Positions 6,921 through 64,000 of a stretch of 64,000 bases of DNA are shown here, piece after piece (positions within the stretch are counted from its first letter, which is position 1; each line of letters begins with the position of its first letter). A program made the position numbers and the translations under genes. The DNA is from Gnetum montanum (Eukaryota; Plantae; Gnetophyta). A model generated the notes under the pieces. The model saw nothing but the letters and a program-made list of their open reading frames with translations, was not told where the DNA came from and did not search any database. Where the stretch lies: the NCBI GenBank assembly GCA_015680685.1, contig MNCI01000811.1, positions 36,060-100,059 on the forward strand, given 5' to 3'.

Positions 6921-7544
6921 TTTCCATATAACCACATACTTCAATGCCACCTCTACTAATGGTCAAGCCTGTTCTATTCTTCATATCTTTCCTCTCAATC
7001 TTATTCATGGGAAAGATACTAGTCTAATATGATAGATTATGAAGATTTCTTTTCTAATTTTTGTTTTACAATGTTCTTTTAATTTTTATTTTTTTTTGAA
7101 TTTTCTTTTGTTATGAATATGCTTCTTTTTATTTGTGTTATTTTATGTTTTCAATCCTATGTTTTTGTTAATAAATTTTCTCTTTTTGTACAGAAGACCA
7201 ACTTTGCTATTTGGCTTATGTTCTATGCTATGAAGATGATTGGGTAAGTAGTTGTGTAATGAAATGAGATCATGTCATTCAACCATCTAGTTTATATGAA
7301 TAAGAGATCTTTGTCATGAAAGTAACATGATTCTTCACATCTCAAAACTAAAATTAACTCATGATCATTATGCCTTGAGAAAAGTAAAAAGGACAAAGTG
7401 GGAATGAAAAATGAGGTGATATTAAGAAGTCTTGCTAATTCTTTACACTTTCTATATGGATCTTATTACTGCATGTATTTATGTTATTAGTAATGTTTTA
7501 ATTTTGATGGAATCATGTTCTTGAATAAGTGTTTCCTTATCATG

Positions 7545-7910
7545 TTCTTAGAAAGACATGTTACCCATGCTTGAACATAATCCTATGGTAAGGAAAGCAT
7601 AGTTGCTAATTAATTAATCCATAAAAAAAGGATTATTCTTGGGGTATCACTAGAAAACATGTTACCCATGCTTGAAGGTAATCCTTTGGTAAATGACACA
7701 TAATTACTAATTGATTAATTCATAAAAATAGCATGATTTATGAGGCACCAATAGAAAGACATGTTATTTATGTCTAAGAATGAGTTACGTTTAGGAATCT
7801 CAAAGGTCTTTTAGACTAGTCTCATCATGTGACTATAAAGACATATTATCCATCTCTGAAGATACACCTCTAATGAGGATTAGCATTAGCTATGAAGCTA
7901 AAAAGACATG
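7545..7910 (+). repeat. Spaced ~30-bp repeat (gaaagacatgttacccatgcctgaaggta) in Athila 3' non-coding region, 5 units
   Basis: Units at ~7551, 7653, 7754, 7837 and 7901. A homologous array lies at 18959-19235. Confidence 0.75.
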
Positions 7911-8842
7911 CATTAGTTGGTTGCAATGTTGCATGTACCTGAATGCATCCCTATCAACACATCCTAGTTGGAAGCTAAATTACATTTGTTGCATTATATA
8001 TGCTATTGTAGTTGCTTCAATGCATTCACATTAATACATATGCATCGATGAAGCCTAAGATGCAATGTAGTCTCTATATTTGCCTATAAATATATGAGCA
8101 TCTGCCACATATGTGGCATCATTTGGCTAGTAGTGTAGCCAAACGCTTGTAATTTTCTTCTGTAATCTTACACATAATTAGTGAGTGCCTATAGCATTGA
8201 TTTAAGTCAATTGTATGGTGTCTTATTTGAGTGGTAATGTACCTAGACATATTTCATAAATTATAATAATATTAATATAATTCATATTCATTGCAATAAT
8301 TTGACTTAGAGTATATTTACTTTTAATGTAATTTATTTTATATGTACTTAGCTAATATTTATATTATCTTTCATATTAATCAATTAGTGGAATGAGTGCA
8401 ACTATTTTCAAGTATAAATACATATTCACTTGGTAATCCTAGTAGCATTATTGCTTGATTTACTAAGTAGCATAACACTTGGTATTCCTAGTAGTGGGTA
8501 CATGAGTGCATGATGTGTATGGTAAGCTAGGAATAGAGACTTATCATTCATAGGCTAACTTAGGATTTATCTTCTTAGTATTAATTAGATTAATTAAATA
8601 ATTAATTTCCATGTTTTCATCTAACTTATACATAGTTGCATAACATCAATAATCATGTGTCTCACTTTGGATTAAATCATATGTGAGAGAGCTACTACTA
8701 GTCCAAATGAGAAGATAGTGATCTATTATCAATGATTAATGATCTAGATACTAGACTAGTCCCATCTATGAAACTCAACCTGATTACACTTGAATGCTTA
8801 TGATTTATATGGTTGAGCATAGGGGACTCTTAGTACTCATCA
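7911..8842 (+). repeat. 5' LTR (5' end missing) of Athila-like element A2
   Basis: ctataaatatatgagcatct matches the LTR at 19913-20230. Ends tactcatca at 8842, followed by PBS ttggtgctgttattaaaga. Confidence 0.75.
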
Positions 8843-8976
8843 TTGGTGCTGTTATTAAAGATGATGCTAATGATCAAGCTTAGTTATATTAGAAACAATC
8901 ACTATAAAATAATTATTGATTTAACTTTTCGAAAAAAATATTATTTTAAGGCACACATACACTATCAACTACAAAA

Positions 8977-10400
8977 ATGTCTTCTTCACATTAGATCCAA
9001 AGTCCATAAAATTATGAGAATAGTTGTATGAGTAATGATAGGATTTATATTGAAGAGAATTGGGATGAAACACTATAAATAAGGATCTCATATGCATATT
9101 TTAACCCTTACTACATTCAAAACCTATGTTCAACTATCATAGATAATCCTAGAGGGGATGAAAAAAAATCATTAGAATAAGAAGAGTACTAAGGTATAGG
9201 ACCTTCAGTAAACCTAGAAGAGAGAAACTAAGGGACCATAGGGGAAGATATAATCATCTTCCCCATCAAATTTCCCATCTAATTCTAACAAAGATAAATA
9301 TATGTATGAAGATAAAGCTCCAATAAGGGATTAGAATGGAGATACAAATAGAGATCAAGGATAAGATATAAGGTACAAAATGCAGCTTAGACAAGACCAT
9401 TATAATTAGGTAAATAAACATAAAGATTATGATCATAACATGTTTGATGATGGCAAACCCTTGTTGGATACTAAAATCATGATACAAATTAGGGAGGTAG
9501 TAAGAATACCCCATAGAAATCAAAGGAAAATCTTCATCAAATGGCTTAATATGAATAACATTTTTAAAATTAATGAATACTACAATTCTAATTCACAACA
9601 TCATATGCAAGTATTCCATGATGTTTACGCCTTGAAAAATATTGAAAGTAAGTGATAAAAGATTAAGCTTTTTCCCATGATGCTAATAGAAGAAGCTAAA
9701 GGTTGGTATAAGTCATTAAAACTAGATTCAATCCATTAGTGGTCCAAAATGCTAGAGCTCTTCAATAAGAAGTACTAGAGATACTTTAGAGTGCCTAATT
9801 TGAGAAAGAAAATCCAAAGATGGAAGCAAGAGAACCATGAATCCCTTGATACAAACTTGGAGAGATACTATTCTCTATTGCATAAAGGTCCAGGTTATGA
9901 AACTTCTCAAAAAGAACAACTTTGTCACATCATAGATGGGGTTTGTAACAAAATAAGAAAGATACTTAGGATCCATACCTAAAGAAGATTATCAAAGTTG
10001 AGAGTTCATCAAATACAAAGGGTAATTAAACCTGTGACAAAAGAATAAGGAGAGCTATGTAAAAGGAAGAGCATAAAGGAATATAATTGGAATCCAACTC
10101 TTCGCAAGAAGAAGGTCCATATTTATGATTAAGAGGAAGAGGTAGCTCTTAATGATATGAATTCACATAAAACCTTTCTATTACAAAAGGTTATCACTAA
10201 GAGTGAAGAAAGTGTACATAGGATATGGAAATTGATGAATAAAAAAGTTACGACCAACTTTAAAACCATGAAGGAAAGAATAAAATAATTTGAATTAATA
10301 GACCAAGATAAGAAGAGTAAAAAGATAAAATAAAATTAAGAAGACAGACAAGAATACTTATTAGCGAATATAGAAACTTTTAGTAGTTAAAGAGGTTGTA
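8977..10400 (+). pseudogene. Decayed Athila-like gag
   Basis: IKLFPMMLIEEAKGWYKSLKLDSIH.WSKMLELFNKKY at ~9660-9775 is the retrotransposon gag core, paralogous to 1830-2300. Confidence 0.8.
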
Positions 10401-12000
10401 AACTAAAACTTGAAGAAGGATTATCAATGTAACATCTATTAATATAAACATCCAAAGGGTTTTTGCCCTATCATATCACACCTACAAGAGTCTAGGAATT
10501 ATGATTTGAAACCAAAGTTCATAGAAAATTAAATACCTAGGAGATTATCTTATCTACAAAGTAATTCTAGATAGTTCTACAACCAAAAGTACTCTCCAAG
10601 TGGGACTTAACCTCAATATTACTATCAACAACAATGGAAAAACCCATAGTCATGGGAGATGCCATCACTAAACTAGCAAGACATTTATTGTCAACTAAAC
10701 CCTTATGGATGCTATGTTCAATAGTCTATTTCTCCTAATTGTTCTACTTCTTATGTGTCAACTTACTACTACTATTCTTTTAAATAGTGTGAACCTATAA
10801 CATGTCCTATGAAATCACCATCCTATGCTTTTCATCATCTATCATATCCTTAATATTCTCATACTCTTTAACATGCATCACCATCAACAATGCAAGAAGA
10901 ATTGGAATCACAACCTGAACAACAGAATGTCACTTGTACTATCAACATAAAAGTGAATGATAATATTAGTAGCTCTAATTGTAATCCTTGAATATATTAT
11001 TTCTTTAAGATGGTTCCCACACATGTGAATAAAATACTAGACCTACTAGTTCATCAAAACCAACACAAGGCCAATATAGTGCAACTTCCTTCCTTATAAA
11101 AATTATGCCTCCTAATCCTACACAAAAGCCAAAAACCATCAACACTTCAAAACAAAACATAAAAAATAAACATGACATTAGGAAGAGACAAAAGATTCCA
11201 TACATTACTTATAATTATAAAGGATGCAGTTGTGGGCTAAAAATTTAAATTGTATAAATAATCCCTATACTAGCCTATAACAAACTTGAAAAATAAGTGT
11301 GTATGTATGTCTACATAATAGCTACTAAACCAAAAGAAATCTAGTGGCTAGAAAATAAAAGTACCAAATCATCCAAAAGATGCATGAAAACATCCAACCT
11401 ACTTATTAGCTCTTGTCCTAAGAAAATAAATCAAATAGAGAATTTTAAAAAGAACATCCTACACCCTAACTATACACTATAAGAAACTATGGAACCAGGA
11501 GACCCAAGAACAAAAACATAAAATTAAAAAGAAAACATATTTGAATCCTCTAAAAAAAATACCATCTATTCTAATTGAATATATGTCTCCAAATAATCAA
11601 AAAATTATTATCATCAATGTTAAATGGACTAATAAAAGAAAATAGAAATCACTAAAAATGATAAATGGATAACTTATGATATACAAACAAGAAAATATGT
11701 GGTTGATTTTTTGAATGCTTTTCTATGAGTTTAATCATGGGAAAGATGCCCCATTTTAAATAAATAACTAATACGTGCATTCTTACTTCTTTTTTTTACA
11801 ATTTTTTATCATTTTTCTATTTCTTACATGTTCATATTTCTTTAGAAATTTCCAATACTTAATATGTTTTCTATTTCCTATTATTTTTTATTTCTTTATA
11901 ATTTTCTATTTTCTTGAGTTATTTACTTTATGTTTTTGTTAATAATGTTGTTAGCCATGATGTAGATATCAACACCGTATGTTAGGTTTTTATTCTATGT

Positions 12001-12523
12001 TGTAACATCCCTAATCCCAAACGGTGCTACAACATAATGAAGATGGTGCCTCTTTATAACAAGTGTTATTGTTATCGTAACAAAAATAAAAAGGATGTGC
12101 GATAATTGAGACTCAAAAGGATGCACTATAATAATGGACATGTCTCTTGAGGTAACCTTTAGGGGTTTGACCTAAGGCATATGTACCTTGGCTTAGAGGT
12201 TGTGCTAGCATGGAGTGGTAGAGCCAGTAAAAGGTGAGTCACAGAAGCCAGGTGAAGTAGGATAGGAAGTTGATTGACCATTCCTTTTAGTTAGTAATAG
12301 GCCTACCTATGGTGGCAGTGTTGGATTTCCTCTAAGGGATAGATGCCAAGGGAAGAAAACTACAACTAAAACTCTAAAAGCATGATCTAGATACTCTATT
12401 TCATATCAATAAAGCATTCTTTACTTTTTCCTTTTGCATTTTTCCTATTATTTCCTTTATGCATACTTTCTAAGATAACATATATTTGACATTTTCCATG
12501 ACATCCGAGAATAGGATGTCACA
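12001..12523 (+). repeat. 5' LTR of CCR4-element copy 1
   Basis: Direct repeat of 18111-18633 (9 mismatches in the first 60 bp by eye). Terminal inverted repeat tgtaacatcc/ggatgtcaca. aataaa at ~12409. Confidence 0.93.
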
Positions 12524-12525
12524 AT

Positions 12526-12537
12526 TGGTATCAGATC
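12526..12537 (+). promoter_or_regulatory. PBS complementary to tRNA-iMet
   Basis: tggtatcagatc, 2 nt after the LTR end (canonical TGGTATCAGAGC). Confidence 0.9.
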
Positions 12538-13218
12538 AAACCATGACCTAAGGACCATTCAGAACCATGGGCTAACTACAACGTAAACCTAATGATAAGC
12601 CATTAAGCCACAACATAGGGAAAGTCATTGATCATCATTGGATGTATCATATGTCTAAGCTATAAGCTAAAATATACCTTTTCATTGATTTTATGAAAAA
12701 TGGATTAGACATCTATAAAAGACATATATGCCACCAACCAACAAAATTCTTTCATGGATATCGTTGATTGATGAAAATCTGATTGCGCTTCATCAAGATT
12801 CATTAATTACAAGAGATGTTGGTAAGGCATGGATACACTAGTCTAGGTAACTCTTATCCATCTAAATACTATAAATATTAATTGATTAAGATCATTATTA
12901 AGTATTTCCCAAAAAGTTAGTAACCATGATCTAAATTGATCTTGTTTTGTTGAAAGTTCTTAACCCTTGTAACTTAGCATTATTCACCATACCAAGACCT
13001 AGGTATTGATAAGAAAAAGAAGTTAACACATTCATAAGATTTTCTAATCTCCATAGCGAAACCAATAATTGGTAAATGATGTTGTTATAATCTTCTCCTT
13101 AATACCTCATTAGGGTATAACCCTAATATGAAAAGGTATAATTATCATAGTTGTTAAATTATAAGGTATAAATTATAATCAATTCCAAGTAATCTAGAAG
13201 ATCTCAAGTTATCCATAT

Positions 13219-13986
13219 TTATGGGACGCGATATCGCATGGGCCGTGATATCGCGTACGTGATATCACGGTCCACTGCAAAATCTAAGAATAAGAGGCAA
13301 CTCTCCCTTGTTTCTAAGTTTAGGCCTAAACCATAGCGAAACTTTGGCACTTTTACCTCTCCAGAGATAGAATAATTTCCATGTGCCTACAGTAGGAGGT
13401 CCAAAGTGAAAGGATCTTTATTTGAGCAAATATTGTACCTGAAGACAAGTTTGTGTACGGAAATAAAGACGAACTTCCTGGATAAACCTTGCAGTACATG
13501 GAATAGGCTAAATAGGATTTTAATTATTGTTATTTATTAGTTATCATTTAAATGCTTTATTAGTTAATTAAATCTCTCTCAACCCTTCTCCCATAGTTAA
13601 GTGCATTCAGTACAAACGCTTTGAACACGTGCGTTATGCTTGGTGATCCTAGTAACGAATAAGGTTTGGTAACCAAGGTTGCATTGGTTTAGGGTGTGAA
13701 TGTCAAGTGGGAATGGATGCTGATGCTAGGTTAATTAAGGCTTAGTTAGTTAGTTAAAGCTAGTTAATTAGTCTCTTCACCCTTCACCTCATTAGCATAG
13801 GAGATAAAACATAAAAGACATAAAAATCACATACCTTAGACTTACTTAGCCATACAACCATGACCAATGATTAACCTTAAGTGTTCCATAAGGTGTGTAG
13901 GCACTTAGTTTGTGGAGTTCAACCATATCGCGCATGTAACGCTCATATTCGTATGGTTGAGTGTAGGGGTACCTCGCCACTCATCA
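13219..13986 (+). mobile_element. Younger CpG-rich solo LTR (Athila-related) nested in CCR4-element copy 1
   Basis: Flanked by TSD catat (13214-13218 and 13987-13991). Termini ttatggg...ccactcatca. Absent from copy 2 at ~59840. Shares cttggt.atcctagta and the 3' end with the A1/A2 LTRs. Confidence 0.8.
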
Positions 13987-14689
13987 CATATCTTAGACTA
14001 GTAATGTCAGTTCAACAAAAAAGGCTATTTTGATCCTCTTAATTTCTAAAATTCCAACTTCCTTTTTTAATAATAATACTATGTGCAATGCATAGTACTT
14101 GTCAAGATGATTCCAACAATACAAATTTCATCTTGATTGGACTTATGGTTTAAGGAATATCAATGTTTTGAATTTCTTATTATGCATGCATTAAAATAAT
14201 ATTAATTTATTATTATAATTATTAAAAAAATAAAAGAGCGAGAGTTCATGGATTCAAACCTAGGCCCTCCCTCTTAATTAAAAATTTTTTCATTTAATTT
14301 TAAAAAAATATTTTTTTGGGTTGAATCCCCAACCCCAGGGGGGAGTAAAGTCTGCGGTCGGCACACACTACCTATGTTAGGGTAACAAATCCTAGTCACG
14401 TAATGTCATAGTTAGTCCAACAGTTACAGAAGTAGGGGAAAGACCTCTTGCACTAACAACTAGAGTAGCCATGTGCCTATTGCTCACTTGCACTTGCCAC
14501 TCCACCTTTATTGACTTCATTCCATTACCACATCCCCCTTCCCACATTGATGTTGCATTATTTCCTAATGCCTATGTTGTTTTCCACCACCAGTCACCAT
14601 CATACATCACAGTGTTGACATTTTCCATTATGCATGCCACTCACCGCTTGCCATTGTCCACCTACATCATGCTATGCCCTTGCCTACCT

Positions 14690-14965
14690 TCTGCACCATC
14701 ATTGTTCCTAGCATCAGAAATCACTACCTCTTCTATTACTCCACAAACACTGCTAGCCCTGGGAATCATGGCCCCTTCTAGTGCATTTCATACATCACTG
14801 ATGTTGGGAATTACTATGCCTTCCAATGCACCATGAATAATGTTAATGCTAGGAATCATTTCCCCTTCCAACACACCATGGACACTACAGGTGTTGGGAA
14901 TCATTGCCCCTTCTGGTACACTATCAATGCCACCGATGCTTGAAATCGTTGCCCCATCTGGCATT
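14690..14965. repeat. Degenerate ~45-bp tandem repeat (gggaatcattgccccttc core), ~6 units
   Basis: Core recurs at ~14716, 14761, 14806, 14851, 14896 and 14941. Confidence 0.65.
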
Positions 14966-16446
14966 ATTATAGAAAACCCTTGCATTGCATGTACATCATG
15001 AAAAACTCACTTCTAGAGACTGATTCCATGTTGAGGAAATTGCATAGCATCACCTCTAGTAGCTTGCGTAGCATCACCTAGGGTCATGCAAGCTTGCCCT
15101 AGGCTACATAGGTCTTGGTGGGGGTTGTGCAAGCCATTGTGTTGGTTGCATAGGCCCTTGCATGGGCTATGCAAGCCTTAAGGGTGATGCAAGATTGACT
15201 GAGTTACACTAGCCTTGGTAAGGGTTTCCCAGGCCTACTTGGATTTTTCTAACTAAAAAAAAAATGCCACTGCCCATTGCACCACTACCCATCATCATCG
15301 TGCTTTCCCAATGCACCACCACCACTACGCTTTCCTAGTGCACCAATTCTGCCCATTGTTGCTGCACTTCTTAGCATGCCCTATCCACCACTGCACTCTT
15401 CTAGTGTACCCTACTCATTGCTCGAATGCCCTATAGCCACTATGGTTGTCCTTACCCCAACAACTATGCCTACCCCCAATGACTTAAAAATTTTTCTATC
15501 CAGTAATGGAAAATTTCAATTGTCAACTGATGGGAAATTCCAATTTTTTTGTCAACCAATGGAGAATTTAAAAATTTTATTCATTATAATTTTGTTTGAA
15601 ATTAGAAATGTAGGAAAAGTTTCAAGAAAAGGAAAATTAGCACACTGGTAGGGAATGGGATAAAAATTTTAAAATTAAGCATGCTTGTCCTGGAACAGTA
15701 TTGGGATGGGCAACATCTTGAGAAGTCTCATTTTTTGTGCCAAGGGTTCTAGATTTTAGAAGCCATAACTTTTGATTTCAAAAGAATTTTTTAGAAAATG
15801 AAAAGTCATTTCTTATAGGTTTTAACCTTTTGGAAACAATGATCAAGTCAAATCCATCCCATGAAACCCTAAAAATTAGTTTTCATCCCTTGTTCAATAT
15901 AGTACCTTAAGACCCTCAAAAGCTTAATTTAGCATAAATTGAGCATATGATGTCCTTTCTCAACATATGAATGGTCATTTCCAACATTTTTCACCATTCT
16001 GAACTCAATGGTGAGAATGGATTTATCATATGGGTATCTAATAATTTAGTAACACCTTAAATCATGTCTTAAGAGGCCATAACATAGACTAGTTAGTCAT
16101 ACCTACCAATTTAATTGTTAAGACTTAATGTAACCTCTTAAAAATTAAGATTAAGGGTGTAGTCTATGTAGATAAGTAATCTTAGTTTCCTAAAACTCTA
16201 GTTTCTCATTAGTACACTACTAAAGTTAGTGTTCTTAAGAGGGGTATAATGGATGTTAATAATTAGATAATGTAGTAAATTAGTTAATCAGTTGATGTAT
16301 CAGTTGATGAATAAAAATGGTTAAGAAGACATATATTAGTTCATTTTGCAATCAAACCATATGGTAGAACAATAGAGAGTCATGATCTTATTTCAATAAG
16401 ATGTAAGATATCCATAAAGAGTAATGGTCTAGCAAAGAATCCAAGA

Positions 16447-17339
16447 ATGAGAATGAAATTTACAACATATAACATGCTTGCAAGATCCCTAGCATATGAG
16501 AAACAACATCCACTATGTCTACCATGGGCCTTGTATTGGCATGAGTATCGATACCCATACATCTTAGTAGAGTTACAAGATTTAGATGTTGATGTCTTGT
16601 ACCTACAAGAAGTATTTTCATGGGAATTTCTATATGAATTCCTACCAAACTTGGAAAATATGGGATACATAGGTATTTATAAGCAAAAAGATTCTTGGGA
16701 AAGTTCTTCTTTAGAGCCATACAGATTAGCCTATTGTAGAAATCACATGGATGGTTGCACTATCTTTTATAAAGAAGTCAAGTTTGAATTAGTACAAAGA
16801 TTTGAATGGAGTTTAGAAAGTATGATTTTTGAAATTCTAGAACCTCAAATGATTAAAAAAAGAACAATTAAGATTTTAGAAAGGTTGCATAGCTTTGGCA
16901 TTGATATTAAAAATCCATCTATCAGGAAGATGTGTATGTAGTGAACATACATTTAATTGCCAAATCAACATGTTTAGATGTTAGACTATGTCTAGGAGCA
17001 TACTTAATTAAGTAAATAGAAGAAAGTTTGAAGAATACTTTATTCCTACACTATATTGATCCAATGCCAATTATGCTTTGTAGAGAATTCAATGCAAAAT
17101 TTGGAAGTAGTGTTTATCAATTCTTAAAATATGAATGTGTAAAAGAATCCTTGGAAGATGAGCCTAATTTGAAGAAGAGGTTTCCATCAATTCAACATGA
17201 AATTCCATTACCTAGTGCATATTCTTCTTACTTTGAATATTTAATAGATAAATTAGATCCTAGAATTTAGGAAAAGATGATGTTGATGGATAGTACTCAT
17301 CAAGAATCATAGTTTACCAATTATTCTACTATGATTAAT
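16447..17339 (+). pseudogene. CCR4: CCR4/nocturnin-family EEP deadenylase domain, intronless, frameshifted; runs into assembly gap
   Basis: FTTYNMLA..YE..HP.C.PWAL.W.EYR...L..LDVDVLYLQEV; GYIGIYKQK; DGCTIFYK..KFELV; then across frameshifts IALALIL....GRCVC, VNIHL......DVRLC, PIMLC(G/R)EFNA..GSSVYQFL, SAYSSY and FTNY. These are the ordered CCR4-type EEP motifs. Confidence 0.88.
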
Positions 17340-18110
17340 NNNNNNNNNNNNNNNNNNNNNNNNNNNNNNNNNNNNNNNNNNNNNNNNNNNNNNNNNNNNN
17401 NNNNNNNNNNNNNNNNNNNNNNNNNNNNNNNNNNNNNNNNNNNNNNNNNNNNNNNNNNNNNNNNNNNNNNNNNNNNNNNNNNNNNNNNNNNNNNNNNNNN
17501 NNNNNNNNNNNNNNNNNNNNNNNNNNNNNNNNNNNNNNNNNNNNNNNNNNNNNNNNNNNNNNNNNNNNNNNNNNNNNNNNNNNNNNNNNNNNNNNNNNNN
17601 NNNNNNNNNNNNNNNNNNNNNNNNNNNNNNNNNNNNNNNNNNNNNNNNNNNNNNNNNNNNNNNNNNNNNNNNNNNNNNNNNNNNNNNNNNNNNNNNNNNN
17701 NNNNNNNNNNNNNNNNNNNNNNNNNNNNNNNNNNNNNNNNNNNNNNNNNNNNNNNNNNNNNNNNNNNNNNNNNNNNNNNNNNNNNNNNNNNNNNNNNNNN
17801 NNNNNNNNNNNNNNNNNNNNNNNNNNNNNNNNNNNNNNNNNNNNNNNNNNNNNNNNNNNNNNNNNNNNNNNNNNNNNNNNNNNNNNNNNNNNNNNNNNNN
17901 AAAATGAGGTAAGTATTACTAAAATGATATTTAAATTCTCATATATTTATCTCACATATATTTTATTTGCAGAATAAGTAACAAACAACTTCAAGTCTAA
18001 AGGAGAAATCAAATTATTAGAGCATAGGATCATAACAAAAGTACTGGAGTTGGATAAAGATAGTGAACATAGACTTGTTTAATGAATAATGAAACCTAAG
18101 GGATGTAGAT

Positions 18111-18633
18111 TGTAACATCCCTATTTCAAAATGGTGCTATTGTATAATGAAGATGGTGCCTCTTCATAACAAGTTTTATCATTATCGTAACAAAACCCAA
18201 AAGGACGTGTTGTAATTGAGACTTGAACAAATACATTGTAATAACAAACATGTCTTTTGAGGTAACCTTTGAGGGCTTGACCTAAGGCATATATACTTGG
18301 GCTTAGAGATCATGCTGGCATGGATTGGTGGAGCTAGTAAAAGGTGATTCAATGGAGCCAAATGAAGTGGAATAGAAAGTAGACTAGCCATCCCTTCTGG
18401 CCAATAATAGGCCTAACCATGGTGGTAGTGATGGATTTCCTCTAAGGGATAGATGTAGAAGGAAGAAAACCACAAGAAACACTCTCATAGAATGATCTAG
18501 ATACTCTATTCCATATGAATAAATCATTCTTTACTCATTCCTTTTGCATTTTTCTTATTATTTCCTTTGTGCATAATGTCTAATATAATGTATATTTGAC
18601 ATTTTCCATGACATTTGGGAATAGTATGTCACA
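18111..18633 (+). repeat. 3' LTR of CCR4-element copy 1
   Basis: Same length (523 bp) and termini as 12001-12523. Preceded by the PPT and followed by the TSD. Confidence 0.93.
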
Positions 18634-19912
18634 TATGCTATCAAGATATTGGGGGAATAATTTTGTAGAGTAGAAAGACCACATCATTCATTTATTCAAT
18701 TTCTATAAATAAGAGGTCCTTATCAGGAAAGAAATATGGTTCCTCTTACATGAATCTAAAATTAACTCATGATCATTATTCCTTAAAGAAAATGGGAAGG
18801 ACCAATGGGGAATGGAAAATGGAGTGGCATTAAGAGGGCTTGATAATTCTTTATACTTCTTCTATGGATCTTAGTAGTTCATATGTTTATTTTATTACTT
18901 ATGTTTTAATTTTTATGAAATCATGTTCTCAAATAAGTATTACCTTACCATGTCACTAGAAATACATGTTACCCATGCCTGAAGGTAGTCCTCTAGTAAT
19001 GAAAATATAATTGACCAATTAATTAATTTACAAATGAATATGATTCCTAGGGTACCATTAGAAAGACATATTACCCTTTCCTAAAGCTAGGCTACTTCTA
19101 AGAATCCCAAAGATTTCTTGGACTACTTTCATTATATGGTTTGAAAAACATGCTACCCATGCCTCAAGGTACTTCTCTAATGGGATTAGCATTGGCTATG
19201 AAGAGAGAAAGACATGTTACCCATGCCTGAAGGTACCCCTCTAACAAACAGCCAAGTTTCTTCAAAAATTTAATGTTTAAGTAATTAATTAATCAAAACC
19301 ACTTTCTATTTTTCTTTTTAGAGTAGTGATGTTTTCATTTGGTTTTAGTGGTCTTATGCTTATATGTTCAGGATGATACAATGCAATGTTACTAGTAAAG
19401 GTATGGGCTTGGTTTTAAATTATAGATGATGCCTAAATCAATACCTAAGATTGAATGTCTTTCATAATGCAAGGAAATGAGGTGAAGAAGAGGATACAAA
19501 AGAGCATACCTATGGACATATAGCAAATAAAATAAGTAAGACTCAAATATCATATGTTCACTACCCATAAATTGATGGGTTAATAAGGAGAAATTTTAGT
19601 CTATCCTTCAAAAGGTTTGCATATAAGAGAAGCACCAAGATAACAACTAAGGTTGGAAGAATTGCCACCACTAAAAACAACATGAAGACTCATAATTAGT
19701 AGATTTTTTAGGACTTTTCTAATTTTTTAAAGTTAATATCTATTTATTATTTTTTTATTTTTGTAATACATCTACTTGAATAAAATTTTATAATGTGATC
19801 TCAAGTTTTTTAATATTAATTAATCTAGTCTTGGTCATTATACAATTTTTGTAATGGAACATCATCCATTTTATACAACTTAAGGATGAGTTCTTAGTGA
19901 GGCATGCAAGTA

Positions 19913-20230
19913 TGATAAAGCATCATTTGTTAAATGTATTAGTTGACTACAATGTCACAAATCTTAAATTCCATCTATGTTAATGCATCTTAGTTGGATG
20001 ATACATCAAATATACTACATTACATCTTCGTCAACGTATCTTAGATGGTTGCTACATTGCATCTACTATGTCTTAGATGTATCAATGCATATGCATCAAT
20101 GAATCTTGAGATGCAACATAATATCCATATTTTTCTATAAATATATGAGCATCTACTATGTGTTTAAATATGTATTTAGTATCATTTGGTTAGTAGTATA
20201 GGAAAAATTTTGTAGTTTTCTTCCATAATC
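19913..20230 (+). repeat. 3' LTR of A2, truncated
   Basis: Starts tgataaag after gaggcatgcaagta. Matches 7911-8168, then similarity ends abruptly. Confidence 0.7.
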
Positions 20231-21120
20231 TGTGGGGCCGAGTAGGCCTGAGGGCGAATGTAGTGAGACATTTGTGATGGCTGTAAAATAGAGGAAGAAG
20301 CAAATGGAGTCCACCATGTGGATGGACTTGGGCCCATCATAGTGGGTGGAACGGATGCATATGTAGGAATTGGTATAGGAGTTATGTGCGGTTGCAAAGT
20401 AGGTACAGTATGGACATGCGGTAGGGTAGCTATGATAGGCGTGTTATGTATTGTGGTAGCGTGCTGATAAATAGTTTGCGGTGGCACAGTTGCTATGGGT
20501 GCAACCAGGGGATAGGGGTGATGAGGCGCTAGGAATGTGGTATGGCTACCCACTGCAGTTGCAGTTGTAGGCTGCTGAAGCGTAGGCGTGATGAAAAAGG
20601 GGGCAGCGACAGGCAACGGGATCGCCCAGAAGGATTGGGTAGACAAGACAGGAATGGGGTTGGCTGGGCCTCCCTCGTCAGATTAGGAATCGAGCTCCTC
20701 TTGCCCATCTTGAAAGATGTTATCCTAGTTGGACACTGTGTCTTGTTGCTTCCTAAGCCTTGTCAGCTGGATTAGTTGATCTAGCAGCCTTTGGTACACT
20801 TTTGTTAAAGGCAGAGGAATGCACTGGTTAGAAATGAATTCCTCCCCATTGCAGTAAGCAAACTCGAAGCTACGTTTTTCTTCAAGTTTGTGTAAATCCA
20901 AGGGCAGGTTAGCCTGCACCTTCTTACAAAGGAAACTGTAATGCTCATGTTGCTGGGCTAGTCCCTCAAGTCCTTGGTTTTTGATTCTGAGAGACCGACG
21001 TGTTTCAGGCATTGGATTCAGCCGTTGTTCAGCACCAGTAGTGCCTTGGACCACGAAGGGCACCTCCGTGTTGGAGGCACCAACGATGATGGTGGCAGAA
21101 GCCATTGTCAAGCAAGTCAT
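20231..21120 (-). pseudogene. Tat-type gag N-terminal region (truncated)
   Basis: ORFs 20725-21120 and 20182-20646 (Pro/Thr-rich linker) parallel 36553-37400. Confidence 0.7.
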
Positions 21121-21189
21121 TATGTGAAAAAAAATGCTAGAATATGTAGAAGAATGAAAGGATTTAAAAATAACAACATGTGGCTTTAC

Positions 21190-21895
21190 ATCTTGCAGGA
21201 TCCTAGAGGGACTATCAAGGCAACCAACCTACACCACACAAGGTGCAAACAACCTCAAAGGGTGTCACGTTTTCACCTATGCTGGCTAGGGTGCAGGATG
21301 CATGCAGGACTACTATAAATAGAATAGGAAAGTTAAATCACCGCTGGAAGGCTTATTGTCTCATAGGGTTCTAGAGGAACCGTCGAGGTGACCGATCTAC
21401 ACCACACGAAGCGTAAACAACCAAAAAGGATGTCGAGTCTACGCTAATGTAAGTTGGGGTGTGGAAGGCATACGAGACTACCGTAAGATGAGCAAATTAA
21501 CTAGTGACCAAGTAAGTTTTGGGTCTCACAGGATCCTAGAGGGACCGTCGAGGCAACTGGTCTGTACCACACAGAATGGGATACAGAACGTAGGCAAGAC
21601 AACTGTAGGATGGGCAAGCTAGCTAGCAATTAGGCAGGCTTTATGTCTCGCAGGGTCCCGGAGGGACTATCCAGGCAACTGGTCTGGACCACATGAGATG
21701 GGGTGTGGAACATGCATGCAAGACGACCATAGAATGAGCTAGTTAACTAGCGATTGGAGGCCTTGTGTTCTGTAGGACTCCAGGGGAACCGTCAGGGCAA
21801 CCGATCTACACCGCACAGAGCGCAAACAACCACAAGAGAGTGTCACATCTACGCTTGTGTGTATTAGGGTGCAGAAGGCTCACATAACTACCATG
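21190..21895 (-). repeat. 5' UTR tandem repeats (caggatcctagagggaccgtcgaggcaac..ctacaccacac core), 5 units
   Basis: Core at ~21197, 21364, 21529, 21610 and 21772. Confidence 0.75.
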
Positions 21896-23784
21896 ACAGG
21901 CAGAAAAGGCACCAAAAGGCCCTCCTTCTAGCACCAGAAAACTATAGCAACCAAAAACGTTAGTGGCTGGAAGAACGCCAGGGTCAGTAATGCAACAGTT
22001 CCAACCCTGTGCCCGCAGGAGGACAATGCTAGGTGTGTGCAAACACGAGGTGCCCTAAATGGTTTGGTCGATCAGACAAGGACTTACATCAGTGTCAATA
22101 TAGCCTTTTGCAATATAAATTGTGTGAATTGCAAGATAGTGCTTATGGGTAGATACAGCAAGAAAAAAAATGTAAAAATGCAACAGTGATGCGAAATAAT
22201 GAATAAAGTAGAGATCCGATGGTAATACGAAGTGATGTTGAACAAGAGAAATGTAAATGTGGTAGTAATACGAGATGGTGCTTGAAGGTAAATAAGATAG
22301 AAAATAATGTAAGAAAGCTAGATAGTAAATGAGAGGTAAAGTAAGATACGGTTAGAAACATGCACCGCTTCAGAGCTACATATTCGTCCAATCAGAGTGG
22401 ATACAATCGACTGCATAGCGTGATGGAGTGTAAAAGTTCCGAGGGTAACCAAAGCATGTCGGGAAGCAAAAAGAGCTATGCTCTTGGGCATAGACTTCAT
22501 ATATGAATAATGCGAGATTCTACCAAGGTGGTAGAACGAAGGCTGGGACCTTACGCTAGCTGGAAGAGGTTCTCTATTTACAGTGTTAAACAGATGGACA
22601 TGACTGTTACAATGCTGGCAAAAAGGGGGGGGGAGGGGAAAGAGCCTTTGCTTCCAAGAGGACGCAAAACCCCTTTTGAAATTTCCAACTTTATAGATTG
22701 CTGCCCCCCCCCCCCATTTTTTTTCTTTCTTTCTTTTGCCAAATCATAGGTACCTTTCTCTTTTTTAGCCAAGAAAATTTTTTAGACCTTTTGTGTGCTG
22801 TTTGCTGAGATATTGATAGGGCTGAAGGTAAGTAAAAGGGACTGTTTGAATGCTACGTGTTGTAGACTTGTGTTACCTCATTGGCGTTACAAGAGTTGTC
22901 TATGACCGTTGGGCTTATAAGACCATTGCGATGCGAGCCTACCATGCAATAACTGTGATCCTACTACATTGCAACTGTGCCATCAGCTCCTAGAGATGTG
23001 TGCCAATGGTTTGATTGGGTGGAGTGCATTGATGTTGCACGAACACCTGCATGCCGCACTGTGCTTTGTGATGTGGCTTGATTGGCATGGCGTAGCACCT
23101 TGCCGCGAGTCCTGCCATATGTCACGTACTTGCTACGTGATGCCATGCTACGTAGCGTAGCGACTGGCCTTAATCGTAATAGTTTTGCTGATTTGCAACC
23201 CATTTTCCTACGATGCAGGTTTTGTTAACTTTGCTGATTTCTCCTTTCGAACTACCTTCTGTCCCTTCCGTAGGATTGCTATGCCTTGTTGCGCCATGTA
23301 GCTTAGTGTAGCGTAGCAGCAGACATGGTCCGCTACTTCCTGGCAAAAAGAGGCATCACTGTAGAACTCGAACTTGGGCAAGGGGAGTGGGTAGTGAAGT
23401 TGTTGCTATGCTACGCTGTGTGACATTACGTAGCATGGAATTTCATTCCGCCATTGTTTTCTGAAGCTTGCTACGCTACATATCATAGCATAGCATAGCA
23501 GGCTTCATGACTTAGAAAACTTGACGAACTATGTTTTGTGCACCCAAGATACTGCCACTGATTCTACACATTGTTTTTGAGTAGGCTGCTGGCTATTTAG
23601 GCTACTTTGGTGGGTGGGCAGGTTGGTATGGAATCCATCCATGCCCAAAGTAGAAAATTTGCTGAACTGGCTGTCCTGGACTCAAAATGTTCTTCTCCCG
23701 ATGAACTGCCACGGTGCTGTGCAGACTGTAAGAGCATGATGAGGCTAGGATGACCCCGCATTCTTTTTGGGGTGTTTCAATAGG

Positions 23785-25600
23785 TACTGAAGAAAACTTA
23801 AGGAAACTGAAAGAGTAGTAATAAGCACATGAGGATGAGCCTTTGGACTATTGCTCTCCAATGAGCCATCTAAACAAGGTTGCTAGGGCTATTAGCTAGT
23901 AGCAAAAAGAGTTTCTAACCAATTCTCAATGTAGAGGAGCTAGGCTACCATTTAAGTTAATCCTACCACCAAGGGACTTGAAGTCTCATTATATTTTGAA
24001 CAACTACTAGAAATCTCAACAAATGTTGTAATCTTCTTAGTGATGCTAGAAGAAGATGAAGGTGTGACTATGGTGGCTATAACATATTAAGAATAGGAGA
24101 CAACTGTGAAGGTAATTATTGATCATATCAATGAATAAATAAAGGTTCTTGTAGTACCCATACCCAATTTTGCTATTATGGTAGACATTTAGATTTGTGT
24201 AGGAACTAGTTCAAGGAGAATGATAGCAATATATCCTAAGGAGGTGTTGGAAAAACTAGTAGGAACTATGCAACTGATTCTAGATATACTCGACATTCTA
24301 GAAGATGTAATAGCAACATAATATGTCCTACTTAAGATCAGGAGAAAACTTCTCATTGCCAAAGCATAACTTTAGGAGGCCACCATTCTAAATAAATAGT
24401 TGGTAGTTGAAGTTATGTAACTCAAAGCCTACTTATCTAATTTGGTGATCCTTTGATCTAAGTTAATAAGAGATGAGATCTTTAAGTGCTTAAGACCAAG
24501 AAAAAGTAGATTGGAAAAGATAAAGAGAGAGTCATCTAAATGTGTAATTATCAAATGCCATGTTGAATAGTATGAAAAATGTCCTTATTTATGTGCATAG
24601 TAAGAATAAAGACCTATCCAAGTAGAATAAGAGGCTACTCAAGATGGGAAAAAAAAGAACAACTAGAGGAGTAGCTTAAGCACTAACATGAAGAATTAGC
24701 CAAAGTCAACTAGCACATAAGGAGATTGGAAGCAAAGAACAAGAGTCTCTGAATGGAGGAAGTATGTGTAAGAAGATAAAAGTTGGCTATCAAGATTTCC
24801 ACCTTGAAAAAAGAGATTCTAAAGTACAGGAAAGTTAAATATAATTATAGGACTAGGTTGGCATACTCAAGGAAGTCAATGAGAAAGATATATAACTCAT
24901 TAAGATCAACATGAATGAAGTCCTCCAATAATTCCAACTCCATGGTGATACATGGTAGCTCATCTTTGATGGAATAAATGCTTATATTAATGCTTAGATC
25001 CACATGAAGGAACTACAAATCAAGAAGATACCAAATATATAGAGCTTGCCAATTTGCAATATGTCAATCTACTAGTGTTCATTGCTAGATAACCAAGATC
25101 AGAGTTAGAAAATCATATAATGAGCTCAAATTACTATACAAAGGGAATTTAAAACTTTGTAAGAACATGAAGTGGAAGCTAGAGATAGTCAATGCAAAGC
25201 TTAAGGTTCTCAAAGTTAAATTCAAAGATTAACAATTAGTCATAAAGAACCTTGTCAAAAGGATGGTTGGCTACCAAGAGATAAAAATACTATTAGAGTG
25301 TTCGACATCAAACATAAATAATTTGCTACCTAGTTTGTTAATGTTAAGAAAATGTTTCTTGATTTATCTTATTAATGGGATGTATCGATAATAGTAACAC
25401 TAGGAAAAGTAACTTGGATAATCAATGATCCCAAAATAAGAGAAGAGAAGATGAAGATCTTCCTTGATGCATTCCAACTAAAATGAACACTAGCCAGACA
25501 ACCACATCTTACACTAAAGCATGGGGAGCTACCATTGAAACTAGAGGAGCCACCATGACTTGGTACCATCAAAGTCAAAGTCAAATTAGAATTAATCATA
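23785..25600 (+). pseudogene. Decayed coiled-coil-rich extra ORF upstream of an Athila-type PPT/LTR (env-like position)
   Basis: Purine-rich, E/K/L-rich broken frames. Followed by a 3' UTR matching ~19770-19912 and by an LTR. Confidence 0.4.
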
Positions 25601-25723
25601 TAGTTTTTATAATGCAACACTTGAAGTTGTTAGTTAGTTAGTCTCATACTTTTTTGATTTTGTAAATAAATCAATCCTAGTTTTGTTAACTCAAGGATGA
25701 GTTTTTAGTTAGTTGTGAAGGTA

Positions 25724-26550
25724 TGATGAACATCATTTCAGTCATCATGTCAATGCATTACTGTCAATATAGGATCTACTTCATCATGCATCAACGTTGA
25801 CAGTAGTCTAATAGATGACTATATAAGTGCATGTACCTACTACATTTATGATATCATTTAGTCATTTCCTTAGCTAGACTTTATCAATTTATTCTTGTAG
25901 AACTTAGAATTATCTTACCAAGTGTCCATAATGTGAGTTGAGTAGATTATTCAAAATTTTATTTTAATTTTTAATGTACATATACACATTGACATGATAG
26001 AAATAAAATGAAGATCTATTCTATTCATTGAAACACTTAAATTCTAGTTCTAATCTCTTTACTTATAGTTTATTTTAATTATTCTCTAATTTCATGCACT
26101 TAGTTAAATATTTTCATTTTACCATACTTAATAATTTTATGAGTACAACCAACTTCAAGCATAAATATATTGATATTTGGTAATACTAGTAATGACACTT
26201 GGTATGTCCAGCAATGAACATTTAGTAACCTAGCAATGTTAATACATGTTCAAGATGTGTATGGCTAGTTGGAAATGGATGTTGTAAGCCTAGGATAGTT
26301 TAGATTTACTTATTTATACTTATATTAATTAGATTAATATTTTTATAATAAACTTTTGTCATGTGCCTTAATCATACATAACCATATAAATTAATTCCAC
26401 ATAAGTTTTACTGGAAATACAATGATCAACGACTTAATGCTTAAGTATTTAGGACATCCAACTAGTATCAATCCATAAAATTTGACTAGATCATGCATAA
26501 AAACTTATGATCACTATGGTTAGGCATATTATTACTCTACTTCTTACTAC
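25724..26550 (+). repeat. Athila-like LTR, closest to LTR 1-747 (possible 3' LTR of A1)
   Basis: Starts tgatgaac after aaggatgagtttttagt..gaaggta. Colinear with 1-747 from actatataagtgcat onward. The 3' end is approximate. Confidence 0.75.
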
Positions 26551-26555
26551 CATCA

Positions 26556-29500
26556 TTGCCACCATAATCCAAACGTTGTAATGGATCTTCTCATAGTGAG
26601 GGTTCATCCTCTACTGTAAAGAAGATCTTATCAAATAATCTTAATTCATTGAACTTTATTCATCAATTATGAATAGATGGCTAATATGTCATGAGGCTTT
26701 AAACTACAATTAACAAATGTAGAATACTCCTAGTATCTAGTACTTAAATGTAGTGTGCAATACCACTAGTATAATTTAATGTTAGCAATATACCTAATAA
26801 ATAAGGGCTTCTCTGTAGAGTTGAAAAGGTTTGGATTATCTTCTATTATGAAGTTTTTTAATGCTAAAATATAAGTCATTGGTAGAATATTTTATGCATA
26901 CATTTAATTACCTCTAGTTCATCTTTCAATTAGGTGGATCTAGAGGTTTAAAATAATATAGAAACATTTTTTATGGTATTGCTTACAAATGAGGAAGATT
27001 GAATTTATACTCAAAGAGGTTAATTTTCCTAGGCATCAATTGATTTATTACTTCAATACTATGAATAAGTAGAATAATTTTTATTCTACTTAAACTACTA
27101 GGATGATACTATCGCAGTTAAGAATTTCATACCCTAGCTTGGCTTAAATAATTTCCTATCAAGGTTTTGTTAAGAATAATAAGAATTCTATCACATGATC
27201 ACTTCTTAATCTTTTCAATGTCGTAATGATGAAATCAAGTTCCATGGACTAGTTATCCATTCAAGAAAAGAAGTTATTGAATGATGCACTTGCTTATTAT
27301 TATACCTTTGAAATACATTTTTCTTATGGCTACATGTTCCCTACCTTTTTCAAAGTTTTTCAAAATGCAAAGTTGATGGATGTCACCATGATGAAGAAGA
27401 ATAGATATAATCATTTGATATCTAATTTGCATATTGAAACTTTCTTTAAAGAAGAATAAGTAATCACTAAGATATCATCAGTGAAGCAATTTAAAGAATA
27501 ATAGACTTAGTGGTGGGATTTATCTTTAAATGATTATTTTATCAATGTTCATAGTAATAATGATACTCCACCATGATCATTTTGAAAATAGGGTTGCTCA
27601 CTTCAAGCCAATTGTAGCTTTTTTCAAGGCCTTAGTGGAAGAAAATCTTATTTAAGAAACTCTATATAATGCAATTAGGTGAAAGATATTGAATATGTTG
27701 ATAAGAATAACTTCCCATCAGCATTCAAGTCCAAAGTCTCATGGAATATAGCTTGATTGACCAAGTCATACTCTATCACAATGAGTAATGATATTTTAAA
27801 TGATTTAATGATTTTGAACTACACTACAATAGGTTACTAATTTAGGGCTAGAGCTTAAGCATATTTCTGAATAAAGATAAAGATATATTTAAAAAATATA
27901 AAATAAAGCCTTAAATAAATATACGAATAAAGATTATATTAATAAGGAAAATATTCTAGAGCATTTACAAAGTATCAATACAAAATGATCAAGGATTTGA
28001 AAGTTTTTGACACTTAAGCAAAAGAATTAAAAAGTCTAAGACAAGAAAGAGCCACCATAGCACCTAGCATAGATCCTAAACTATTCAATAGAGTTCATAA
28101 ATTGATGATAAACATTTTGAAGTTAAAAAATAATAATAATAATTAGAAAGATAGAAACGCCACCTTTCTATAGAATCTTAAAAAGATTTAAAAGGAAACA
28201 GGGAAGTTGACAATTTAGAAATTTAAAATAGAAGAAACTTTACTTGAGGAAAGAAAATAGCACAATTTCATGATCATGAAGTTATAAAAATTGATAGTAA
28301 CGAATGAATTTATAATTCACTATAAATAAGTGTTAAATTCATTGATTAATTTTGATTTTGAAGGATCTAGGACTTTGTTGGATGCATGTTGGTGCTTTGG
28401 ATTCTGATTTTCAATTTTGATAGGTTTCAAGCTTTAGATGAATGTTTTTACTCATTCCCTATTCTTAGTGATTTGATTTTTGTGCATGGTTATGGAGGTC
28501 TCAAGATGAATAGGTTAATCATGTGATGATGTTATGATGTTATGGTATCATGAATGAGTTCCTATATATTTTTCAATATAATACATATGGGATGTAGGTA
28601 GGATAATATTATTGTGTTATAGATGACATTGACAAATTGGGAAGTATGTGTGTGACTTGGAGATAATAGAGGTTTCATTACTACTCCTTACATAAATAAT
28701 GATATATAGATTACATGTTATTTGGTGTCTTAAATCTATTGGTTGTACGTGATGTATGATGCTATCATTTTTAGACTATTTTTATCAAGCATAAAATAGG
28801 GGATGTGTAAAGGCTTCTACTCAATCTTTGTACTAACTTCATTATTGACCTTTTGGTATGTCAACACTTTAGATAAAATGGAGAATATGGAATTGTGTTT
28901 TTGTTATAGTCTTACAGGGCCAATGAAAGAAGATGATAAACAAGGACTTTGAATTCATAATGAAGACTTCAAAATGAGGGCTACATTGAGATGTTGAATT
29001 GAAGACTAAAGTGGACAAGGTAAGAACATGGATGGAAATGGAGTCTATGAGCCAAATGAAGATGTTTCGAGGATTTCCAAGATGTTGAATTACTAGAGAA
29101 ATGCCTTAGGATCCAAACTTGACTTGCAGGATGGATTTCTGCAATTGATAGTAGATGTCCCATTGGTGGCATAGATGTCCAAGGATAGATGTCTATGTGC
29201 AAATGTTCACACATCTAGGTAGATGCCTTTCCTTAATTGAGAAATTTTTATAGGTATATATCCACACCAAAACATAGACATCTTCACAAAAATATAGATG
29301 TCTCTGCTAGCCATTAACTAGCCATTGGATAAATTCCAAAAATTTTCTGGAAACCTAAAGAGTATAAAACAAAGAAAAATTCATGAGAAACTCAAACTAT
29401 TGTTCATTGAAAAATCTATCCTTAGCTATTCAAAAGAAGATTGGTTTATGTTCTTAATTGATTTATCATTTGTATGTATTGTAGGTAGTGAGCTTAATTA

Positions 29501-30033
29501 CAAGAACGCTATAAATCAAGTTATACTCTCTCTTTGATCTTTTTCTTTCTTTCTTTGTAGCCCTACAGGGTTGATGTGATTCTTGCAAGAAGNGGCCCCC
29601 AACTTGGGTACCTCTACACTTAGAGGGTAGAATCCTTGCACACCTTTGGACTTTGTTCCTTAGAAAAATGTGGTTTAGAGGACACCACAACATTTACAAA
29701 ATTTGAGATATGCTTCAGAGTGTTTTGATGCTACAAATACACTCAACCCTATAAGCTCCCAACAAGCTCAAAATATGGTTTCAAGGAAACCAAAACCTTT
29801 ACTAAACATAAGCTCTACTTTGGAATGTTTTGTTACTACAAAATCACTCAACCCCTCAAGGTCTTGACAAGCTTAATGAAGATGGCTTCTTGCAAGAATC
29901 ACATCAACCCTGTAGGGCTACAAAGAAAGAAAGAAAAAGATCAAAGAGAGAGTATAACTTGATTTATAGCGTTCTTGTAATTAAGCTCACTACCTACAAT
30001 ACATACAAATGATAAATCAATTAAGAACATAAA
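26556..30033 (+). mobile_element. 3' part of an unclassified (copia/SIRE-like) LTR element: decayed ORF, PPT, LTR from ~28806
   Basis: Broken K/E-rich ORF at ~26570-28300. PPT-like ataaaataggggatg then tgtaaagg at 28806. TATA-like agtataaaa at 29361. The LTR continues in the inverted contig 29594-30033. Confidence 0.4.
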
Positions 30034-30034
30034 N

Positions 30035-30854
30035 AGTAGATCTTTAATTCATATCTTATGATTATCTTAGGAAATGAGGTAAGTATTAAGAAAGTAATGT
30101 TTAATTTTCCATATAATTCTTCTCATGTATATTTTATTTGCAAAATAAGCAAGAGATGACTTCAAGCCTAGAGGAGAAATCAAATTATTAGAGCATAAGA
30201 TCATAAAAGGAGAATTTGAGTTAGAAAGAGATAGTGTACATAAACCCATTCGAGGATTAATGAAACCTAAGAAGGGTAGACTATAATGTCCCTATTACCA
30301 AATGGTTCCACAGCATATTGAAGATGGTGTCTCTTCATAACTAATCTTGAGATTAGTGTAACAAGACTCAAAAGAGAAGTTGTAATTGAGACTAGAAAGA
30401 ATGTGTTATAATAACAAACATGTCTCTTGAGATGACCTCCAAGGGTTTGACCTAAAATATTTATACCTAGGCATTAGAGGTCATATCGGCATGGAGTTGT
30501 GGAGTCGTTAAAGGTGAGTAATGGGTTTTAGGTGAAGTAGGATAGGAAGAGGATAGGCCATACCTTTTGATTGTTTATAGGCCTAACCATGGTGGCAATG
30601 TTGGATTGCCTTTAAGGGATAGATGCCAAAGAATGAAAACCCCAAGGAACACTTAAAGCATGATCTAGATATATTATTTTGCATTAATAAAGCATCATTT
30701 TCCTCTTTTCTTCTACATTTTCCATGTTATTGTCTTTACGCTTAATGTTGAATGTTACTTATATTTGATGTTTGTTATGTTATCTTCTTACACCTAATGT
30801 CTAATATAACATGTATTTGACATTTTCTAGGACATCAAGTAGTGGAATGTCACA
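30035..30854 (+). mobile_element. 3' end (3' UTR, PPT, 573-bp LTR 30282-30854) of a third CCR4-element family copy; 5' part lost at an N junction
   Basis: 30035-30281 matches 63661-63905 and 17901-18110. The LTR ends ggaatgtcaca and matches 12001-12523 plus a 50-bp tandem duplication. Confidence 0.85.
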
Positions 30855-63905: not shown

Positions 63906-64000
63906 TGTCATATTCCCATTACCAAATAATGTTGTTACATAACAAAGATAATGTCTCTTCATAACAACTGTTATTATTATCGTAACAAGACCCAAAAGGG
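63906..64000 (+). repeat. Start of 3' LTR of CCR4-element copy 2
   Basis: tgtcatattcccatt...aagataatgtctcttcataac matches 58832-58925. Confidence 0.88.

Follow-up and report, generated by a model that had tools for sequence, protein, structure and literature searches.

How does a nuclease of the CCR4 type come to lie between the long terminal repeats (LTRs) of a retrotransposon that shows no recognisable gag or pol? The question is raised by a locus of Gnetum montanum that occupies positions 12001-18633 of a 64,000-nucleotide window (assembly GCA_015680685.1, contig MNCI01000811.1, positions 36,060 to 100,059 of the forward strand). A sequence-only reading, made without database searches, had described it as a member of a non-autonomous LTR family whose only recognisable cargo is a CCR4-type EEP domain, and this description was borne out in both copies of the family that could be inspected. 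The locus is probably a decayed insertion of a pol-less, trans-mobilized LTR retrotransposon, the family of which carried a complete and intronless CCR4-type open reading frame (ORF) of about 370 codons, in sense orientation and about 0.44 kb upstream of the 3' LTR. Coordinates are those of the window, and every feature of the element, its relatives and its target site is given on the forward strand.

The 6.6-kb unit at 12001-18633, hereafter copy 1, is a true LTR-retrotransposon insertion, old and dead. Its two 523-bp LTRs (12001-12523 and 18111-18633) begin with TG, end with CA and align without a gap, with 429 of 523 bases identical (82%; 94 differences; Kimura two-parameter distance, K2P, of 0.21). 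Two nucleotides past the 5' LTR lies a primer-binding site (PBS), TGGTATCAGATC (12526-12537), which matches the initiator-tRNA-Met consensus of plant elements at 11 of 12 positions and is the sole match to this canonical PBS within the window. Primer sites of this type are typical of Ty1/copia-type elements. Directly 5' of the 3' LTR stands a purine-rich tract, the polypurine tract (PPT) aagggatgtaga (18098-18109), which is conserved in the two relatives described below. The unit is flanked by a 5-bp target-site duplication (TSD), with TATGT at 11996-12000 and TATGC at 18634-18638, the two halves being identical at four of five positions. In a paralogous repeat, positions 7221-7235 read TTCTATGCTATGAAG; here the pentamer is present only once, as TATGC (7224-7228), and the empty-site junction sits within an ungapped alignment block (7207-7237). 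Because this empty site is clean, the whole 6.6-kb unit must have arrived in one integrase-type event. Direct LTRs, a PBS with a PPT, and a TSD with its empty site, which together define an LTR element, are thus all found at 12001-18633, as the sequence-only reading had listed them. The DNA at the insertion site is itself a repeat, since 7224-7894 matches 18634-19200 as a 74-76% identical paralogue; this flanking repeat contains tandem units of 101 nucleotides (nt) at 7553-7754.

A second copy with the same layout begins at 58831 and extends to 64000, the last position of the window. It comprises a 5' LTR (58831-59369), a PBS, TGGTATCAGAAG, at 59374-59385, and the first 95 bases of a 3' LTR (63906-64000; 83.5% identical to 58830-58926), which is cut by the window end. 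From one LTR to the other, the two copies are colinear (75-81% identity) except in three places: about 33 nt have been lost at the 3' end of the 5' LTR of copy 2, segments 12956-13183 and 13215-13993 of copy 1 are missing in copy 2, and the central ~1.3 kb (14274-15598 versus 60120-61598) is repeat-rich and barely alignable. The cargo stands at the same place in both. A third family member, consisting of the last 250 nt of an interior followed by an LTR (30036-30855), is uninformative regarding the cargo, since it starts directly after an assembly join of a single N. Relative to copies 1 and 2, its LTR has about 50-90 extra bases near the 3' end (30768-30855), which suggests that an LTR subfamily may exist.

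The only recognisable gene in the element is a sense-strand EEP domain that can be read without invoking an intron. In copy 1, its first 299 codons are found at 16447-17339, up to an assembly gap, while copy 2 contains the domain at its complete length of 371 codons (62358-63470). There it ends 435 nt before the 3' LTR, which agrees with the intronless sense EEP domain ~0.45 kb before the 3' LTR of the sequence-only reading. The 164-residue ORF of copy 1 (16447-16938) was compared with solved structures using phmmer. It best matched CNOT6L (4.9e-15, 59 bits), followed by CNOT6 (1.2e-12, 51 bits), yeast Ccr4 (3.6e-8, 37 bits), Angel2 (5.5e-8, 36 bits), nocturnin (4.6e-6, 30 bits) and PDE12 (1e-4, 25 bits). 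Among the same structures, the endonucleases APE1, L1, TRAS1 and R1 gave no match at E up to 1. The C-terminal pieces of copy 2 matched weakly, and only Angel2 and nocturnin, and a protein-language-model atlas returned nocturnin and CNOT6 clusters for the domain. A HMMER pass over 1.84 billion representative proteins retrieved 465 proteins at E up to 0.001 (best 2.7e-13), the closest of which are 35-44% identical to the domain. Named matches included CCR4-NOT subunit 6, carbon catabolite repressor protein 4 homolog 1 and poly(A)-specific ribonuclease, from protists, red algae, haptophytes, a nematode and angiosperms. A homologue look-up with a 208-residue piece was empty among proteins of 114-364 residues. 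Since the Pfam EEP model was not significant (best 0.075), the family assignment rests on the phmmer comparison with structures and on the 1.84-billion library.

For phylogenetic placement, both copies, with an X at each break, were aligned with 75 full-domain representatives and analysed with FastTree and under LG+G4. The copies form a pair with support 100, at the end of a long stem of 1.72 changes per column, and fall within the well-supported clade of CCR4 proper, together with the angiosperm CCR4 homolog 1 group. An approximately unbiased (AU) test did not reject a clade uniting the copies with this group (p 0.28), and the nearest rows of the tree (P0087 and P0150) are unnamed and ~35% identical. 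Such a tree had been proposed alongside the assignment to the CCR4 branch rather than to the endonucleases of long interspersed nuclear elements (LINEs). The assignment stood, with CNOT6L as best match, and so did the position within the CCR4-proper clade; the tree itself holds no Angel, nocturnin or PDE12 sequences, and the test between these branches is the ranking against solved structures. By its matches and by its place in the tree, the domain is CCR4 proper (CNOT6/Ccr4-like).

The ORF starts with MRMK, four residues ahead of the first EEP motif, and no N-terminal leucine-rich repeat (LRR) or other CAF1/NOT1 docking module is present; no Pfam domain was found upstream in the pieces scanned. 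Homology between the copies continues upstream of the ORF, where they share no common frame.

Both inspected cargo copies are pseudogenes and are not functional. The copy 1 domain, with two deletions of 2 nt and four stops, is read along 16447-16857, 16859-16939 and 16941-17339 according to the pairwise DNA alignment. That of copy 2, read along 62358-62681, 62684-62728, 62731-62925 and 62928-63467, is broken by eight stops and three 1-nt deletions; a further deletion, of 3 nt, is in frame and takes out the Glu of LQE. Five frameshifts, the in-frame deletion and 11 of the 12 stops are private to one copy. In the 75 CCR4 representatives, 53 alignment columns show conservation of 85% or more, and 42 of them survive in one copy or both (35 of the 46 shown by copy 1; 29 of 50 in copy 2); overall identity to these representatives is 26-28%. 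Among the 42 are the Asn of YN.L, the Glu of LQE, DGC, the His of N.H, GDFN, the Asp of LDY and the final DH. No single copy has the full catalytic set: in copy 1, GD is changed to RE and the end is unread, and copy 2 lacks the Glu of LQE and has Asp in place of His. The motif series of the sequence-only reading is accordingly a composite of two copies, in which TLDYI and P.DH are seen in copy 2 alone; in copy 1, by colinearity, they would lie in the gap. Because the lesions, apart from one unclear site, are private and each catalytic motif is kept in at least one copy, the frame of the ancestor was most likely open over at least ~300 codons and encoded a full active site. The ORF was thus probably intact when the family spread.

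Mismatches between the copies within the EEP domain are spread evenly over codon positions (1:2:3 = 50:43:46), and their divergence there (~19%) about equals that of the LTRs within copy 1 (18%). These two observations indicate that both copies were derived from all but identical masters, at much the same time, and decayed neutrally thereafter. There is no purifying-selection signal between the two copies, and none is expected if they arose in a single burst. With age given by 0.21/(2r), the insertion would date back ~8 million years if sites changed as in rice (1.3e-8 per site per year) and ~48 million years if they changed at a slower, conifer-like 2.2e-9. The N-terminal half of the copy 1 nuclease lies in the longest stop-free stretch of the window (16315-16938, 208 codons). 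The chance of meeting no stop over 208 codons after such decay is roughly 6%, which is lucky, not remarkable.

How many such copies exist was approached by mapping contigs of two DNA runs at a likeness of at least 93% and summing their word depth. Summed depth is ~1,500-47,000 over the EEP domain and 8,000-26,000 over the 3' LTR, against 3-25 over hypervariable positions 14314-15255. This contrast of two to three orders of magnitude, together with the similar levels of EEP and LTR, suggests that the family numbers thousands of copies and that most of them keep the cargo. Words of 15600-17339 were found in runs of six species labels from seven studies. Two RNA runs contained ~20 reads each, all partial, 90-95% alike and mostly at the LTR end, and gave no sign of expression of copy 1.

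Whether the element could have encoded its own mobility proteins was addressed by dividing the interiors of both copies, EEP excluded, into stop-free pieces and scanning each against Pfam. None of the 106 pieces (65 of at least 38 residues in six frames, and 41 sense-strand pieces of 24-37 residues) matched gag, protease, reverse transcriptase (RT), RNase H or integrase; the scan merely returned five unrelated chance matches at E >0.02. As a positive control, a 112-residue piece of a neighbouring decayed element (51647-51982) matched RVT_1 at 5.5e-10. The interior thus lacks recognisable gag/pol, as first read. In copy 1, 12538-16446 is without coding signal, and the 3' untranslated interior, which includes the purine-rich tract, spans 17901-18110. 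Between this and the EEP domain lies the assembly gap, 561 N of estimated length (17340-17900). Its edges, 17339 and 17901, correspond to positions 63251 and 63697 of copy 2, and since they are colinear, order and orientation are kept across the gap. By the same colinearity, ~445 nt would be expected in place of the 561 N, namely the last ~72 EEP codons and ~230 nt of 3' region. Public contigs of the two DNA runs do not bridge the gap (zero depth over 17454-17767), and continuity across it is plausible by comparison with copy 2.

The element has all the cis requirements of retrotransposition and none of the trans requirements. It would have been transcribed from LTR to LTR, and its RNA would have been packaged, reverse transcribed from an initiator-tRNA-Met primer and integrated by the proteins (Gag, RT and integrase) of an autonomous helper. 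The nuclease gene may have been acquired as cDNA, either through template switching on a co-packaged mRNA or through insertion of a retrocopy, an entry that parallels those of Bs1 of maize and of the oncogenes of defective retroviruses. The ORF would still have been open, with a complete active site, when both copies arose in one burst, after which both presumably decayed neutrally.

Several points weigh against this account. A helper element was not identified within the window. No donor gene was found among the 1.84 billion representatives, and the capture is therefore argued solely from analogy and from the lack of introns. The more specific claim that a spliced CCR4-like mRNA had been captured did not find support: the nearest protein, at the 35-44% given above, is distant, and the copies sit on a long branch of their own within CCR4 proper. 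The depth of collapsed contigs is no copy number. The Pfam EEP model missed the decayed pieces of a domain that is demonstrably there, and a very divergent gag could escape as well. The history of the ORF is read from two copies only, the C-terminal quarter of the copy 1 domain being unread in the gap. Finally, the codon at 17013-17015 is damaged in both copies, reading TAA in copy 1 and missing precisely its first base in copy 2, so that the master ORF may already have been interrupted at this site.

Could the nuclease instead have been a working accessory gene, kept by selection for a task such as trimming element or host RNAs at their 3' ends or poly(A) tails? We consider this unlikely, although several observations point in its direction. 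The copies share a long stem and are no closer than 35-44% to any known protein, their ORF was open over at least 299 codons with all catalytic motifs kept when they were made, and contig depth over EEP matches that over the LTR, as expected if nearly all members retain the cargo. On the other side, part of the stem length may be due to parallel AT-biased decay, or to a divergent host paralogue that the databases lack, and the copies bear no trace of purifying selection, though a single burst would leave none. The distance from the 5' LTR start to the ORF is ~4.4 kb in copy 1 and ~3.5 kb in copy 2, many AUGs come first, and no route to translation is evident; RNA reads are negligible, the docking module for the CCR4-NOT complex is missing, and the lesion at 17013 is possibly shared. 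In its strongest form, which we hold to be improbable, this idea would have a lineage that lost or never had gag-pol yet selectively maintained its own CCR4-type RNA nuclease. Such a gene would represent a new class of retroelement accessory gene acting on the poly(A) or 3' ends of element or host RNAs, for instance by protecting the RNA of the element from decay or by preparing it for packaging. On present evidence, a passenger role for the nuclease appears as likely as a useful one.

It is very unlikely that the element was autonomous, with a gag-pol that decayed past recognition or that lies inside the assembly gaps. Such a view would be favoured by the age of the LTR pair, by the gaps in both copies and by the failure of Pfam to recognise even the EEP domain in pieces. 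However, the interior outside EEP amounts to just 3.0-3.9 kb across the two copies, and pol would not fit into the gaps of 561 and 201 N. Moreover, the RT piece of another decayed element of the window was still detected, as was the equally old EEP domain at 5e-15, and most of the interior is colinear between the copies without coding signal. Still less credible is a LINE APE-type endonuclease inserted in the LTR element or mistaken for part of it. EEP nucleases are standard in LINEs, and GDFN and DH are common to both branches, yet all structure matches are to CCR4, Angel, nocturnin or PDE12, the best database matches are CCR4 proteins and no RT follows the domain. A host single-exon CCR4-like gene lying between unrelated solo LTRs or in a segmental duplication, which the repeated flanking DNA (7224-7894 versus 18634-19200) might call to mind, is highly improbable, as PBS and PPT abut the LTRs, TSD and empty site mark a single insertion of the whole 6.6-kb unit, copy 2 is colinear from LTR to LTR at a different locus, and depth is in the thousands.

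Read as a pol-less, trans-mobilized carrier of a host-type gene, the element has relatives in kind among known systems. Bs1 of maize and similar elements are LTR elements without full pol that are mobilized in trans and carry host coding sequence picked up as cDNA. The CCR4-carrying element is likewise pol-less with a host-type coding cargo. Unlike Bs1, it has no gag and carries a whole catalytic-domain ORF, with all active-site motifs present across the copies, as its sole recognisable coding sequence; it also exists in apparently thousands of copies, and has no known donor gene. With large retrotransposon derivatives (LARDs) it shares LTRs, PBS, PPT, a 5-bp TSD, a multi-kb interior without gag/pol and high copy number. 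The interior of LARDs is non-coding by definition, whereas the remnant of a recognisable enzyme ORF of CCR4 type is found here. As in acutely transforming defective retroviruses with their v-onc genes, an intronless gene of cellular type stands between LTRs in place of viral genes, and spread would depend on a helper; unlike them, this is a plant retrotransposon with an RNA nuclease as cargo, no evidence of a host effect, and germline amplification to high copy number. Compared with CCR4, CNOT6, CNOT6L and plant CCR4 homolog 1, the nuclease has the same EEP fold family and motif order and, taking the two copies together, the same catalytic residues, and best matches the solved CNOT6L. It differs from these deadenylases in consisting of the nuclease domain alone, without LRR or other N-terminal partner-binding region, in being at most 44% identical to any known member, and in being intronless, borne by a transposable element (TE) and broken in the copies seen.

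Capture of genes by LTR retrotransposons is known, usually as fragments in low-copy elements. Here, an apparently thousands-strong family has as its sole coding content a complete catalytic domain from the main family of mRNA deadenylases, and this cargo was apparently intact at the time of spread. Structurally the case is solid and unusual; any functional role is speculative. In agreement with the sequence-only reading, which knew of no earlier description, our literature search, which did not extend to TE libraries, yielded no account of CCR4 cargo in an LTR element; one gymnosperm paper that mentions both topics deals with host CCR4-NOT proteins only. If the nuclease was kept by selection, it would be the first RNA-decay enzyme to serve as a retrotransposon accessory gene, and would link CCR4-NOT-type decay to TE control from the side of the element. 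If it was a passenger, it still bears on annotation, because CCR4-like pseudogenes by the thousand can swell the counts of gene families here and in related genomes, and the family would offer a clean case for how non-autonomous elements acquire and carry genes.

Other parts of the interior deserve mention. The hypervariable, repeat-rich stretch of copy 1 (14314-15569; 60620-61560 in copy 2), which has single-copy contig depth, is relatively G+C-rich and barely alignable between the copies; its units include GGGCTATGCAAGCC and 45-nt repeats that resemble Pro/His-coding sequence. Downstream, ~700 nt ahead of the ORF, lies a weak 5S-rRNA-like stretch (15646-15743), with a homologous counterpart in copy 2 at ~61640-61735. 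In both copies it resembles, by eye, the 3' half of plant 5S rRNA. Rfam scored the copy 1 stretch at 11.9 bits for 5S_rRNA (E 8.7; threshold 38 bits), reported no family at the gathering score anywhere in the window, and returned none in copy 2 even below threshold. A 34-nt 5S pattern found no match within three mismatches, copy 2 differing from it by eye at four positions. ARAGORN detected no tRNA-like pieces. A 5S-like stretch calls to mind Cassandra, a terminal-repeat retrotransposon in miniature (TRIM) that carries 5S sequence in its LTR. Here the stretch is interior and not significant by Rfam, and at 6.6 kb the element is no TRIM; with 11.9 of 38 bits, there is no recognisable 5S segment, and a Cassandra-like 5S-bearing element was set aside. 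In the 3' region, a 64-nt stretch is shared by the three family members (17909-17972, 63707-63770 and 30073-30136). Its ends in copy 1 are consensus splice sites (AG|GTAAGT ... TTTGCAG|A), which are nearly kept in copy 2, while the AG is lost in the third member. This stretch could be a small intron or a product of chance.

The window as a whole is AT-rich (34% G+C) and full of decayed repeats, and no ORF in it reaches 250 residues. A near-perfect long inverted repeat at 29500-30033, immediately ahead of the 1-N join at the third family member, has arms (~29500-29590 and ~29890-29980) that enclose ~300 nt and looks like a foldback element or one resembling a miniature inverted-repeat transposable element (MITE). 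Direct repeats of ~0.9 kb, 20 kb apart and 72-89% identical (34451-35341 and 54623-55519), bracket a large element that contains the Ty3/gypsy-type RT piece used above as control (51647-51982). This large LTR element (34451-55519) was considered as a helper and rejected, as it shows no similarity to the LTRs of the CCR4-carrying family.

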